A DNA stretch of 64,000 nt. It comes from Epiperipatus broadwayi. Lineage: Eukaryota; Animalia; Onychophora. The stretch's first letter is position 1. Each line of letters starts with the position of its first letter. Below, piece by piece: positions 33,825 through 40,174 of the stretch. Made by a program: the position numbers and the translations under genes. The DNA is taken from contig JAQFVV010000006.1 of the NCBI GenBank assembly GCA_028023455.1, forward strand, positions 7,502,001 to 7,566,000, in the 5' to 3' direction. The notes below the pieces were generated by a model. The model ran no database searches and was not told the DNA's origin. It saw only the letters and a list, made by a program, of their open reading frames with translations.

Positions 33825-34005
33825 TATTATTATTATTATTATTATTATTATTATTATTATTATTATTATTATTATTATTATTATTATTATTATTATTATT
33901 ATTATTATTATTATTATTATTATTATTATTATTATTATTATTATTATTATTATTATTATTATTATTATTATTATTATTATTATTATTATTATTATTATTA
34001 TTATT
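33825..34005. repeat. (ATT)n microsatellite, about 60 units; (AAT)n tail of the L1/Tx1-like element
   Basis: Read directly. Confidence 0.97.
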
Positions 34006-36760
34006 GTTTCAAAGAAAATAACTTTATTGATGACCATAGGGTTACATTTGCCATAAGACACTTCGTATACATATATTTACATTGCTAGTGAGTAAACCAA
34101 GTTTAAGTTTGTATCTGTGATGTACAAAAAAAAATTAAATTAGGAGGGAAAGATATTTAAACATTGTTAAGGGGAGTGAAAAATACATATGTATATGTTA
34201 CATTTGTGAGCGCTGCTTGCTGTAATCAGAGTTCTCAAAAGTCTTGGGTTATCATTGTTCAATTTGCAAAACTTCAACTTGTATGTATATTGCAGTTCTG
34301 GGTTTAGTTTGCTTTCCAGTATTTGAGTTCTGATTTTGTTGTTCCTGTCCTCTATATTAATCGTATGCAATCAAAGACGACATTCTGTTTTTTATTTGTA
34401 GATACTTGCCACATTTATTTTTTATTTTTTTAAATATTTGGTTGATGGCATAGATTGTTGGTTATTGGGAGCCATCTTAGAGGTTTGATTGTTGTGTTAT
34501 CAGTGACCAGGTTGCTGCGTAGATGTCTGGATGTGCAATTTTATTGTCTCTGGCTCGTAGTTTTGCCAGTTTGATATTGAAAGTTGATGGATGTCGCCTT
34601 GTGTTGTTACCTAAAGTGAATGTGCATCTAGTGCACCAGTATGCATAAAGCACAAAAGTGGCTGCATGGACTGATGGAATAGAGCCTTTGCAATATGCAT
34701 TAAAGATTGTTTGAAGGGTTGTGTTAGATTGTCTATATGCTCCTATCATAATAAATCGAATTCTGTCTAGTGCCGGACAAAGATAGAATAGATGTTCCTG
34801 GGTTTCTTCAGCCCTGTGACACAGGGGACAAAAAGGATCAATGTTAGTGTATAGTCTCCGATATCTCAGAAAATATGTCATGGGCAGTGCATGTAGGTTT
34901 AGTCTCAGCAAAAAATCAAAATATTTTGGCTCCAGGGACCATTTTTTAAACTTACGGAGTAATTGTAGATTATTGATTTTCAGCATTGTCAGATTGGTAT
35001 CATGGCTTGGATTTGGATGGATTAATGAATAAATTTGCCAGTATGAGTGCTTGTATATTGTCTGAAGAGATATCTGTGGGGCTGTGCTTTTTATATGATT
35101 GATCATTGATGCTAGTTGGTCATAGGCAGGGGGTGGTCTATCTGTTGGAGTTATTTGAAGTAGGCATTCAAGCATTGGAAAGTGTTTGACTGTGGATGCT
35201 ATTAAGTTTGTGGCCTTCTGTAGATGGAAAATATAAATACTGTGAAGTCCTAGTCCATTGTGAATAGGTGGTCTGGTAAGTTGTTTTGCAGATATTGACA
35301 CAGTCTTCCGCTGCCACAAGAGCTTATTACATAGAGAAGAGATTTTGTTAATAAAACCTTTAGAAAAGGAGATAATGGGTGAGTAATAGGTGATTTTTGT
35401 TATGGCTAGCTGGTTAAATAGCTGGATCTTGGAGTATATTGAAAGATATGCCTTTGAGAGTGAAATGGTAATTCGTTCTGTTTCTTCTTTGAGTTTATTC
35501 TGGATCTTGACCCTCATTGCACTTGCACTCATATAAAAGGGAAATCCCAAGAAAGCAGATGGCTTTCCCCCATACATGCCTGTGCACTGCTTTGCATTAT
35601 AAAGAGACCAAACTGCAGTCTTATTTAGATTGACCCTGAGTTTGTGTGTGGCTGCAAATTCTTGTAGTATTGTATGCAAGGCTGGTAGGCGTTTTTTAGA
35701 TGGGAGGAAGACAGTTATATCATCCATATAAGCGATACATGTTACCTGCTGAGATGTGTTTGGTATTTGGATGCCAATGAATGTTTGCTGGATTTTTACT
35801 AATAGAGGGTTGATGTAAAAAGTGAAAAGTAAAGCACTCAGGGGGGATCCTTGTGAGATCGATTGTGTTGGAGTAAAAGATTCAGAATTTTTGCCACTGA
35901 GTGTAATATGTATATCCCGATTTAACAACAAGTTGGTTATAACATATAAAAGAGTGCGAGGTATTTCAGTGGCAGCCAACATTTTAATTAATATCTCGAT
36001 TGCCACAGAATCAAAAGCTGACTCAATGTCTATTTGAACTGCAACTGGGCTGTATTTTTTCCGGCCTCGCACCGACCCCAATACAGCTTTGAAAAGAAGT
36101 GCTGCCTGTCCTGTAGATGATTGCTTTCTTGCAAACTGATATGGTGAAATCAATGGGAGCAGATATGGCTCAATCCTGTCTTTAATGACTTTCTCAATGA
36201 TCTTGATGGCTATTGGGCACATGGAGATAGGCCTAATATTATTAAGGGTGGTTATTGGAGCTGGTTTCTTATTAAATGGTACTATTGCAATTGGATAAAG
36301 ATTTTCAATGTTGTATATTTTTTGTGAGAGATAGTTTGCAAGATTACATAATACTTGAGTAGTTGTATGGCTAAGGTGCTCATACACAAATTTTGGTATG
36401 CCATGAGTGCCTGGATGACAGGCATTGGGCAGAGTGGCAAGCTTCGAAGCAAATTCATTAGTGGTAAATGGTGTATTTGTTTCCGGTGATCCAAAATAAT
36501 CCGGTGGTGGGTTGAAGAGTTGATGGGTCTGAAGATTCTGTTTGAAATGCTTATAAATAGGTTCAATCATGTTATGTGCTGCATGTATAGTTGTTCCAAT
36601 TTGAAGTGCCATAGGCACTCTAATGGTGGAGGGAAAACCCATGGCCCATCTGATGTAGCCTCTAGTCCATGTATGTTGTTGACTGAGGCAGATTTTGCTT
36701 TTTTTGATGGCTAGATAGTCTTTAAGTGCTGCACATGTGCTGTTATATGTCTGGGTGAGA
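34006..36760 (-). mobile_element. 5'-truncated L1/Tx1-like non-LTR retrotransposon with an uninterrupted RT + C-terminal CCHC zinc-knuckle ORF (34477-36760) and a 470-bp 3' UTR
   Basis: RT motifs IRPISM, QIDIESAFDSV, SQGSPLSALLF and YMDD; NGLGL thumb motif; CPLC-x4-ETQEHLFYLC. AATAAA (34023-34028, minus) lies just before an (AAT)n tail. There is no endonuclease because the 5' end is cut at a (TAA)n tract. Confidence 0.9.
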
Positions 36761-36843
36761 TAATAATAATAATAATAATATATAATAATAATAAACACAT
36801 ATCAGCATATATTATTATTATTATTATTATTATTATTATTATT
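36761..36843. repeat. (TAA)~11, a 17-bp unique spacer (AACACATATCAGCATAT), then (ATT)~11
   Basis: Read directly; two opposed microsatellite tracts. Confidence 0.93.
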
Positions 36844-38119: not shown

Positions 38120-38485
38120 TTATTATTATTATTATTATTATTATTATTATTATTATTATTATTATTATTATTATTATTATTATTATTATTATTATTATTA
38201 TTATTATTATTATTATTATTATTATTATTATTATTATTATTATTATTATTATTATTATTATTATTATTATTATTATTATTATTATTATTATTATTATTAT
38301 TATTATTATTATTATTATTATTATTATTATTATTATTATTATTATTATTATTATTATTATTATTATTATTATTATTATTATTATTATTATTATTATTATT
38401 ATTATTATTATTATTATTATTATTATTATTATTATTATTATTATTATTATTATTATTATTATTATTATTATTATTATTATTATTA
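38120..38485. repeat. (ATT)n microsatellite, about 122 units
   Basis: Read directly. The poly-Y and poly-I ORFs here are artefacts of the repeat. Confidence 0.97.
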
Positions 38486-40024
38486 AATTATAATGACATT
38501 TTATTAGCAATAAAACAGCTTAAAAATAAAAAAAGGTTTGGATATGATATGCTACCTGTTTTTATTTATAAAGGATGTGCTGAACTGCTAGCTCCAGTGC
38601 TTTGTTATATTTTTAATATCTCTTTGCAGCAGGGTATTTTTCCTGATTCTTGGAAAGTTGCAAAAGTTATACCAATACCAAAAATCAAATCAAATGATGT
38701 TAGTAATTATAGACCTATTTCATTATTATGTATATCTGGAAAAATCTTTGAAAAATGTGTGTATAACAAGATAATAGATAAAGTATGTAAATCTTTATCT
38801 AAAACACAATATGGTTTTATTCCAGGTAGATCTGTTGAGACTAATTTGATACATATTAAAGATGCTATTGCAAATGCAATTGATAACAAATTACAGCTAG
38901 ATGTGATTTATTTTGATTTAAGAAAAGCATTTGACCGAGTAGATCACTCTAGATTGATTAGTAAGTTGCACAAGATTGGTTTTAGTTGTGAACTTTTGCA
39001 GTGGTTTGTATCTTTTGTCTCAAATAGACCTAATTTTGTATCTTTTGGGTCTGCAAAATCATACACATATTTTAGTAATGCTGGAGTGCCTCAAGGAAGT
39101 ATACTTGGACCACTGCTTTTTTCAGTTTATTCTTTGGATATAGAGCAGTGTGTAAGTGGTTCTGACATTCTCAGCTTTGCAGATGATATTAAACTATATA
39201 AAACTATTAAGAATTTTGATGATCAGACGATTTTGCAGTCTGATATCAAGAATTTTCAGGATTGGTGTGTGGAAAACTATAAGGAAATTAACATTGAAAA
39301 ATGTTGTGTCATATCATTTTCTAAAAAATCAACTACAAGTCTGTTTAATTATACACTAAACTCAAAAAGTATTTTAAGAAAAGAAGATCATAAAGATTTA
39401 GGTATTATTTTTAATAATAATGGAACATTTAATAATATTCAAAATATTATTACAAACAGTTATAAAATAATGGGTTTAATTCTCAGAAACTGTAAAATGT
39501 TTAAGAGAAATACATGTGTGTATTTGTTTCATACATTGGTCTTACCTATTTTAAATTATGGATCCTTGATCTGGAACTCATATAAATTAAATAATAGATT
39601 AGCACTGGAAAAGGTTTATAAAATTTTTTTCAGATACATTAAATCAGAAATAATATGTGACAACAATGCACTCTACAAAAGACGAATCTATACTGATATG
39701 AAGTATTTAAAAAAAATTACATTAGGTATAATAGATGTGAGAAGTTGCCAAACAACATTATCATTTAAGCTAAAGATAAAGGATACAAGATCAAAAAATA
39801 TGTATAATATTCCAAAATTTAAAAGTGAAACATTAAAAAATTCAGCATTAGTACGATGACCTAGATTGTACAATAAATACTTTAATGTTGTTAATATATT
39901 TGAAACAGATGATAGAACATTTAGGACTACTGTGCAAAAAACTCTGCAAATGCTTTGTGAACTAGATTAGCTGTGCATTTTTTGTTTGGATGTAAAATCT
40001 GTTAAATGTACTAAATTAAATCAA
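38486..40024 (+). mobile_element. 5'-truncated CR1-clade non-LTR retrotransposon with an uninterrupted RT ORF (open from ~38486 to 39859) and an (ATT)n tail
   Basis: GIFPDSWKVAKVIPIPK, NYRPISLL, QYGFIPGRS, YFDLRKAFDRVDH, GVPQGSILGPLLF, FADDIK and DLGIIF motifs. Confidence 0.9.
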
Positions 40025-40174
40025 ATTATTATTATTATTATTATTATTATTATTATTATTATTATTATTATTATAATAATAATAATAATAATAATAATAA
40101 TAATAATAATAATAATAATAATAATAATAATAATAATAATAATAATAATAATAATAATAATAATAATAATAATA
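40025..40174. repeat. (ATT)~16 switching to (AAT)~33
   Basis: Read directly; strand flip near 40074. Confidence 0.95.

Follow-up and report, generated by a model that had tools for sequence, protein, structure and literature searches.

A stack of three 5′-truncated long interspersed nuclear elements (LINEs), named here E1, E2 and E3, is present in a 64-kb window of the genome of the onychophoran Epiperipatus broadwayi (assembly GCA_028023455.1, contig JAQFVV010000006.1, positions 7,502,001 to 7,566,000 of the forward strand). The window is this whole stretch of 64,000 nucleotides, and positions are those of the window unless a locus is named. E1 looks L1-like (class A) and E2 and E3 look CR1/jockey-like (class B), the names being taken from domains and Atlas leads rather than from a phylogeny. 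The stack was probably built in several independent retrotransposition events, all of them into a single (TTA)n/(TAA)n tract. Serial targeting is supported by the tails of the families, the polarity of the tracts at 5′ ends, a rule of relative orientation and a difference in age between the elements. The locus is an ordinary instance of a behaviour seen throughout the genome and not an exotic single event. Among the explanations offered by an initial annotation of this DNA, microsatellite-targeted serial insertion shared across clades is the one that fits the tails, the tract polarity and the recurrence of mixed stacks obeying the orientation rule.

The tracts of the stack were delimited using Tandem Repeats Finder and the elements using profile searches (RVT_1 and zf-RVT) and tblastn. 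The leftmost tract, (TAT)60 (33825–34005, minus strand), reads (TAA)60 in the sense of E1 and represents the E1 3′ tail, in which remains of the target tract may be included. E1 itself (34006–36759, minus strand) retains the reverse transcriptase (RT) and zinc-knuckle part of open reading frame 2 (RVT_1 and zf-RVT) and the 3′ untranslated region (UTR). At the E1 5′ junction, an imperfect (ATA)11 filler (36760–36794), whose polarity is opposite to that of the surrounding tract, adjoins a piece of inverted E1 sequence of ~19–20 nt (AAACACATATCAGCATATAT, ~36793–36812, plus strand) that was recognised by comparison with the longest E1 copy (i.e. locus L002) and other E1 copies. A plus-strand (TAT)11 tract (36810–36843) is read as the remnant of the (TTA)n at the E2 5′ end that received E1. 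E2 (36844–38118, plus strand) is a decayed element consisting of the C-terminal half of the RT, detected as pieces of RVT_1, and the 3′ UTR. The (ATT)122 tract that follows (38119–38485, plus strand) is simultaneously the 3′ tail of E2 and the 5′ flank of E3. E3 (38486–40024, plus strand) belongs to a second CR1/jockey-like family and contains a 436-aa open RT frame (38549–39859). It is followed by its own (ATT)16 tail (40025–40074, plus strand) and by a strand-switched (ATA)34 tract (40073–40175), which forms a perfect palindrome with the E3 tail and is the tail of none of the three elements. All of the tracts except the imperfect (ATA)11 are 100% pure. These results reproduced every tract position of the initial annotation and recovered the three 5′-truncated RT elements that it had placed between the tracts; other genomic copies of each family extend further upstream. 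The 17 bp that it had described between two of the tracts are present and contain no host DNA, but they are inverted E1 sequence (~36793–36812) rather than a plain spacer.

The tracts of the stack are mostly the elements' own tails. A first look at the 5.6-Gb genome gave 5472, 1207 and 1816 candidates for E1, E2 and E3, respectively, and 30 E1 loci, 20 E2 loci and one E3 locus were sampled as the best matches to the window copies. The 3′ ends of the E1 family read ...TTGAAAC followed by (ATA)n, i.e. (TAA)n in their own sense, at 30/30 loci. E2-family copies ended in ...AATAAATTAA(ATTAA)n and then (ATT)n in 18 of 20 cases, and E3-family ends consisted of ...AAATTAAATTAA and then (ATT)n. Tails elsewhere in the genome ranged from a few units up to 137 for E1 (~17–137 after the TTGAAAC ends) and up to 189 for E2, so that the 60 and 122 units found in the window are covered. 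As the tails are features of the families, (TTA)60 is the tail of E1, (ATT)122 that of E2 and (ATT)16 that of E3. Judged from these genomic ends, the RNAs of class A are predicted to terminate in (UAA)n and those of class B in (UUA)n, giving two complementary classes of tail. It had been proposed that all three elements directly abut a (TTA)n tract in their own sense; this is the case for E2 and E3, whereas E1 ends in (TAA)n and meets a (TTA)-sense filler on its 5′ side only. The class A 3′ ends (34006–34030 in the window, and the sampled loci) have in common AATAAAG...TTGAAAC, with an AATAAA resembling a polyadenylation signal just before (TAA)n. At seven loci (L009, L020, L021, L006, L008, L043 and L044) the tail motif shifts along its length, with tracts such as (AAG)139, (AGA)72, (CTA)50...(ACT)58, (ATG)n and (CTT/CTC)n. 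A drift of tails to new trinucleotides seems possible and may seed further classes of tail and target.

Examination of truncated copies revealed that the 5′ end adjoins a tract of the element's own tail polarity in 15 of 15 cases, the window copies of E2 and E3 included (E2, 8/8 and E3, 3/3, both with the window copies; E1, 4/4 elsewhere). An association of other copies' 5′ junctions with the microsatellite, which the initial annotation had put forward as a check, was therefore present in every truncated copy sampled. About half of these 5′ tracts can be shown to be the tail of a LINE that had inserted before (L034, L043, L039, L013 and L018). The flanks of 48 non-redundant loci were then searched with the family proteins over distances of up to 1.5 kb. 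Neighbouring LINE fragments followed a single orientation rule in 21 of 22 cases, members of the same class being parallel and members of opposite classes antiparallel (binomial p = 5.5e-6); in the sole exception, L043, no tract links the neighbour. One hallmark of a target-specific LINE, i.e. both ends in the same repeat and a fixed orientation, was thus exhibited by 15/15 junctions and 21/22 neighbours.

The arrangements observed at these loci recapitulate those of the stack. Seven E2 loci exhibited the order E2(+), (ATT)n, class A(−) (L035, L036, L037, L042, L043, L047 and L048), and at least five E1 loci the order E1(+), (TAA)n, class B(−) (L004, L013, L022, L027 and L030). One locus resembles the middle of the stack, with the 5′ end of a class A(−) element, (TTA)32 and the 5′ end of an E2(+) copy (L042), and another (L039) carries E2(+), followed by a third family(+) and E3(+), with ATT tracts as most of the links. 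Head-to-tail pairs of the same class are common (L034, L039 and L051). Within the window, the tracts of the stack are the sole TAA/TTA tracts of at least six units in the whole 64 kb, and RT matches to the E1, E2 and E3 families are confined to the stack. Outside it, the window contains 0 such tracts or RT matches, as compared to 0.15 per kb beside the sampled copies (Poisson p = 1.4e-4).

Two further observations concern the neighbours. The third family in L039 is represented by a 5′-truncated fragment of ~260–320 bp (L039:2869–3128) from a further class B family, with a 3′ end of (AATTG)3 followed by (ATT)n, and L043, L013 and L022 have related 3′ ends. A common sequence, comprising an ATG and coding-like DNA, directly follows the E1 tails in L015, L024 and L025 (and L014, L017 and L002). 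It resembles the 5′ region of another class A element, suggesting head-to-tail arrays that include long copies.

The relative ages of the elements were assessed from private substitutions, defined as sites where the window copy differs from all sampled relatives. E1 exhibited 0 such substitutions in 2754 bases, E2 7 in 1270 and E3, for which three comparators only were available, 18 in 1539. The differences were significant for E1 as compared to E2 (Fisher test, p = 3e-4) and to E3 (p = 9e-9), and E1 is 99.9% identical to another genomic copy. E2 additionally has a deletion of ~41 bp relative to 20 copies and three frame changes. No other genomic copy shares these defects of E2, indicating that they arose in place, after insertion. 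E1 is clearly the latest arrival in the stack. The description of all three elements as well preserved does not apply to E2, in view of its deletion, frame changes and seven private substitutions.

The 5′ end of E1 resembles a junction of the twin-priming or fold-back type. In intact copies, the 19–20 nt that are inverted in the window sit immediately 5′ of the truncation point and next to an internal (TA)n, and the source of the inverted segment ends ~5 nt upstream of that point (in L002 and other copies). An inverted segment from just 5′ of the non-inverted part, with only a few bases lost, is the pattern of twin priming, which was reportedly described for 5′ inversions of mammalian L1 by Ostertag and Kazazian in 2001 (cited in PMC6007223). 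E1 is unlike this L1 pattern in that the inverted piece is just ~19–20 nt long and that, atypically, 34 nt of (ATA)-type trinucleotide filler with the opposite polarity stand between it and the E1 body. The junction folds as a 33-bp hairpin, with the inverted piece as loop and the filler as 5′ arm (z = −5.6). The junction string has a single occurrence in the 5.6-Gb genome, indicating that it was formed at this insertion; inheritance of the 5′ structure from a source subfamily is ruled out by the same uniqueness. The internal (TA)n lies between the endonuclease and RT parts of E1-family copies, and in the window (36753–36812) the truncation point falls there. This repeat is also unstable in other copies, having expanded to (TA)47 in L003 (4257–4350) and being accompanied by an inverted duplication of 22–26 nt in L012 (1407–1498), which indicates that it is fragile and prone to fold back.

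At the right end of the stack, the perfect (ATT)16(ATA)34 palindrome is followed by ~30 A-rich bases and then by an old repeat. A (ATT)n(ATA)n junction was also found after the E2 copy in L040, and such switches are frequent across the genome, with ~814 sites of (ATT)6(ATA)6 (40055–40092 in the window) and ~695 of the mirror form, (ATA)6(TTA)6. The initial annotation had described the stack as symmetric, with both outer ends reading (ATT)n inwards. This symmetry is no feature of the stack as a unit. The left tract is the tail of E1 and the right tract, (TAA)34, is a common genomic strand switch; the symmetry thus amounts to the E1 tail beside such a switch and is no signature of a two-ended event.

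These observations suggest the following history. The genome harbours at least two tail classes of LINEs with an apurinic/apyrimidinic endonuclease (APE), class B including E2, E3 and the further family of L039. Each class would prefer duplex TAA/TTA tracts, mostly the long tails of earlier LINEs, and would insert so that its tail motif comes to lie on the sense strand of the new copy, with the consequence that classes A and B are antiparallel to each other and members of one class parallel. Every insertion would add a tail of 20 to 190 units, and, as each new tail is a fresh landing pad, stacks would grow. At the window locus, E2 and E3 would have inserted first, both on the plus strand and in either order. 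E1 would have come last, entering the (TTA)n that lay 5′ of E2, in the minus orientation that the rule predicts for class A, and its 5′ end would have been sealed untidily with the 34-nt filler and the inverted E1 copy of 19–20 nt. We infer the route by which this 5′ junction formed and, likewise, the source of strand choice, which may lie in base pairing between the RNA tail and the nicked target strand or in strand-specific nicking by the endonuclease. A more tentative proposal is that, with complementary (UAA)n and (UUA)n tails, the insertions of each group could act as an opposite-strand pad for the other. This would provide a reciprocal, strand-locked 'safe haven' in which stacks grow at tails and away from genes, and RNA–RNA or cDNA–cDNA pairing might explain the palindromic switches and the 5′ filler.

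Several points weigh against this history of serial insertion. The ages of E2 and E3 are inseparable (p = 0.11, with three comparators for E3). The model predicts neither the polarity switch at (ATA)34 (40073–40175) nor that of the (ATA)11 filler (36760–36794). No empty or intermediate allele was found, both flanks matching only their own locus in the assembly, and no read spans the tracts, short-read Logan contigs breaking there. The tails of 7 of 20 E2 copies run into unique DNA, indicating a preference (or consumption of the tract) and no absolute specificity. The copies were sampled as the best matches to the window copies and are no random sample, and some loci are possibly non-independent, as L014 and L020 are on one contig and L015, L024 and L025 have a common downstream sequence. 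The choice between a pre-existing 5′ tract and one made at integration is settled solely where the 3′ end of an earlier LINE precedes the tract.

Among the alternatives, the one that survives best is that E2 and E3 are a single chimeric retrocopy, produced when the RT completed copying a truncated E3 RNA and continued from the (UUA)n tail of an E2 RNA, with E1 arriving later. The two elements have the same orientation and similar apparent ages, with only a tail between them and an ATT microhomology at the truncation point of E3, and same-class head-to-tail pairs of this kind are common (the L034, L039 and L051 pairs). Serial insertion into an existing tail, however, yields an identical structure, and the tandem class A copies in L018 are 97% and 91% identical to the query, favouring serial events for such pairs. 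This origin of the E2–E3 pair is therefore regarded as unlikely.

Another explanation is that the tracts were made at integration, by slippage of the RT or by jumps onto tails, so that targeting is only apparent, or that later recombination occurred between tracts. Such an origin would agree with the great length of the 5′ tracts (up to 192 units), with the lack of a recognisable LINE end in the DNA before several of them (L035, L049 and L051) and with the genome-wide frequency of polarity switches. Random insertion, however, would not place different families side by side, as was observed at 22 of the 48 loci sampled, or impose a relative orientation on them, and wherever the upstream neighbour is identifiable the tract is its tail. 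Tracts of this origin seem distinctly improbable as an account of the stack.

The two-ended event suggested by the initial annotation fares worse still. Under this scheme, the ends of a break in TTA DNA would prime on E1 RNA (left) and E3 RNA (right), the RT would jump from the E3 RNA to the E2 tail, and the cDNAs would be joined in the middle of the stack. The tails do point outwards with the 5′ ends facing each other, the tails of classes A and B are complementary, the middle junction carries filler and an inverted stretch of E1, such as twin priming or template switching may leave, and E2 and E3 are of indistinguishable age. The parts of one event should nevertheless share one age, and this equality was not found for E1 and E2 (0/2754 against 7/1270, p = 3e-4, together with the ~41-bp deletion and three frame changes of E2). 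Moreover, a remnant of (TTA)n separates the members of head-to-head pairs, both in this stack and in L042 and L050, as would be expected of two insertions into a single tract, and the frequent tail-to-tail pairs could not be produced in this way. A two-ended event is contradicted for E1 as against E2 and E3, whose ages differ, and may apply only to the E2–E3 pair; as an origin of the whole stack it is very improbable. Least credible of all is an assembly artefact, in which collapse or mis-threading of the ATT tracts would have brought unrelated copies of LINEs together. In its favour, the locus is present once in the assembly, and pure tracts as long as 180 and 367 bp are difficult to assemble and break short-read contigs. 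The contig, however, is megabases long, the E1 5′ junction is a unique, non-repetitive string that connects E1 with the tract preceding E2, junctions of every type are found again at independent loci of other contigs, and an orientation rule is not expected from misassembly.

The domain content of the elements points to three APE-type LINE families in two deep groups, with the endonuclease observed in the E1 and E2 families. E1 contains a 773-aa open frame with RVT_1 (E = 6e-36) and zf-RVT, and an APE endonuclease (Exo_endo_phos) lies upstream in the longer copy L002. Endonuclease, RT and C-terminal zinc knuckle, the domain set of the L1/Tx1 group, are thus all found in E1, with the endonuclease coming from L002. 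In E2, RVT_1 is split across three frames (tblastn), and longer copies of the family encode Exo_endo_phos_2 and RVT_1. The 436-aa open frame of E3 matches RVT_1 with E = 8e-30. As in the CR1/jockey group, APE and RT (E2 family) are combined with a 3′ end of short tandem repeats and no poly(A) (E2 and E3). RT identity is 38% between E2 and E3 and 23% between E1 and E3, the range for E1 as compared to E2 or E3 being 23–32%. A PDB search returned human L1 ORF2p as the top match for E1 and E3 alike and so does not discriminate between clades. Atlas neighbours, taken as leads only, carry LINE-1 ORF2 names for E1 and, for E2 and E3, fall into 'jockey-like' clusters and clusters with ALKBH8_N. In L002, the endonuclease (516–1439) and the RT (1384–3783) occupy distinct frames that overlap shortly before the internal (TA)n, which may represent a frameshift site or a shared defect.

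The DNA on either side of the stack consists of old repeats. On the left, positions 33391–33748 contain an old fold-back-like repeat with an 80-bp tandem duplication inside it (33541–33698); this repeat has many genomic copies on both strands with 75–88% identity. On the right, positions 40207–40580 contain an old dispersed repeat of ~370 bp that is 75–80% identical to many copies, whose left boundary is constant and whose right boundary is variable. Were it a minus-strand class B element, its tail would account for (TAA)34, but the sampled loci yielded no second copy by which this could be supported. In-phase host exons had been proposed on both sides as an argument for correct placement of the flanks. 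The listing of open reading frames contains no convincing frames within 10 kb on either side.

LINEs with repeat tails are known from several lineages, including the I factor with (TAA)n, UnaL2 and RTE families, for which slippage has been proposed (PMC3747384, PMC6007223), and pairing of the 3′ repeats with the nicked target aids the initiation of reverse transcription (PMC6007223, PMC3747384). The elements described here are similar in bearing a short tandem repeat in place of poly(A). They are unlike these families in having tails of up to ~190 units that are recurrent targets for the complementary tail class, and E1, which looks L1-like from its zf-RVT domain and an Atlas lead, differs from the I factor in apparently lying outside the I clade. 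In Bombyx mori, two LINE families, TRAS1 and SART1, insert into one repeat in opposite directions (PMC7265360). The present system shares with them the use of one simple repeat by two families, the opposite directions and the formation of arrays (PMC7265360). TRAS1 and SART1, however, are both R1-clade elements with poly(A) ends, and their specificity for a pentanucleotide repeat of telomeres was shown to be set by the endonuclease, whereas here two groups (L1-like and CR1/jockey-like) with complementary trinucleotide tails occupy interstitial sites. Microsatellite-specific LINEs have been reported mostly in early-branched, Tx1 and R1 groups (PMC4640811), and the same source, citing Kojima and Fujiwara (2004), describes copies with one microsatellite on both sides and head-to-tail arrays. 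The same repeat on both flanks and the head-to-tail arrays link the present elements to those non-LTR retrotransposons (Tx1, R1 and restriction-like-endonuclease clades). They differ in that class B is CR1/jockey-like and that the specificity appears to be a strong preference and not absolute.

No description of antiparallel LINE stacks with complementary tails was found in the open-access literature. The use by two unrelated groups of complementary trinucleotide tails as reciprocal, oppositely oriented targets, with the formation of mixed interstitial stacks, appears to be a new combination of known features. For annotation, stacks of this kind are nested insertions and neither composite elements nor assembly errors. 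The tail motif and the strand together predict where a LINE lands and in which orientation, a rule that is testable genome-wide. If it holds in a full census, these elements would offer a natural system for examining the choice of target and strand, and in particular the contributions of RNA-tail pairing and endonuclease specificity. The rule would further illustrate the growth of long AT-rich trinucleotide tracts and clusters of LINEs in a genome of 5.6 Gb, and the sharing of one niche by different LINE clades.

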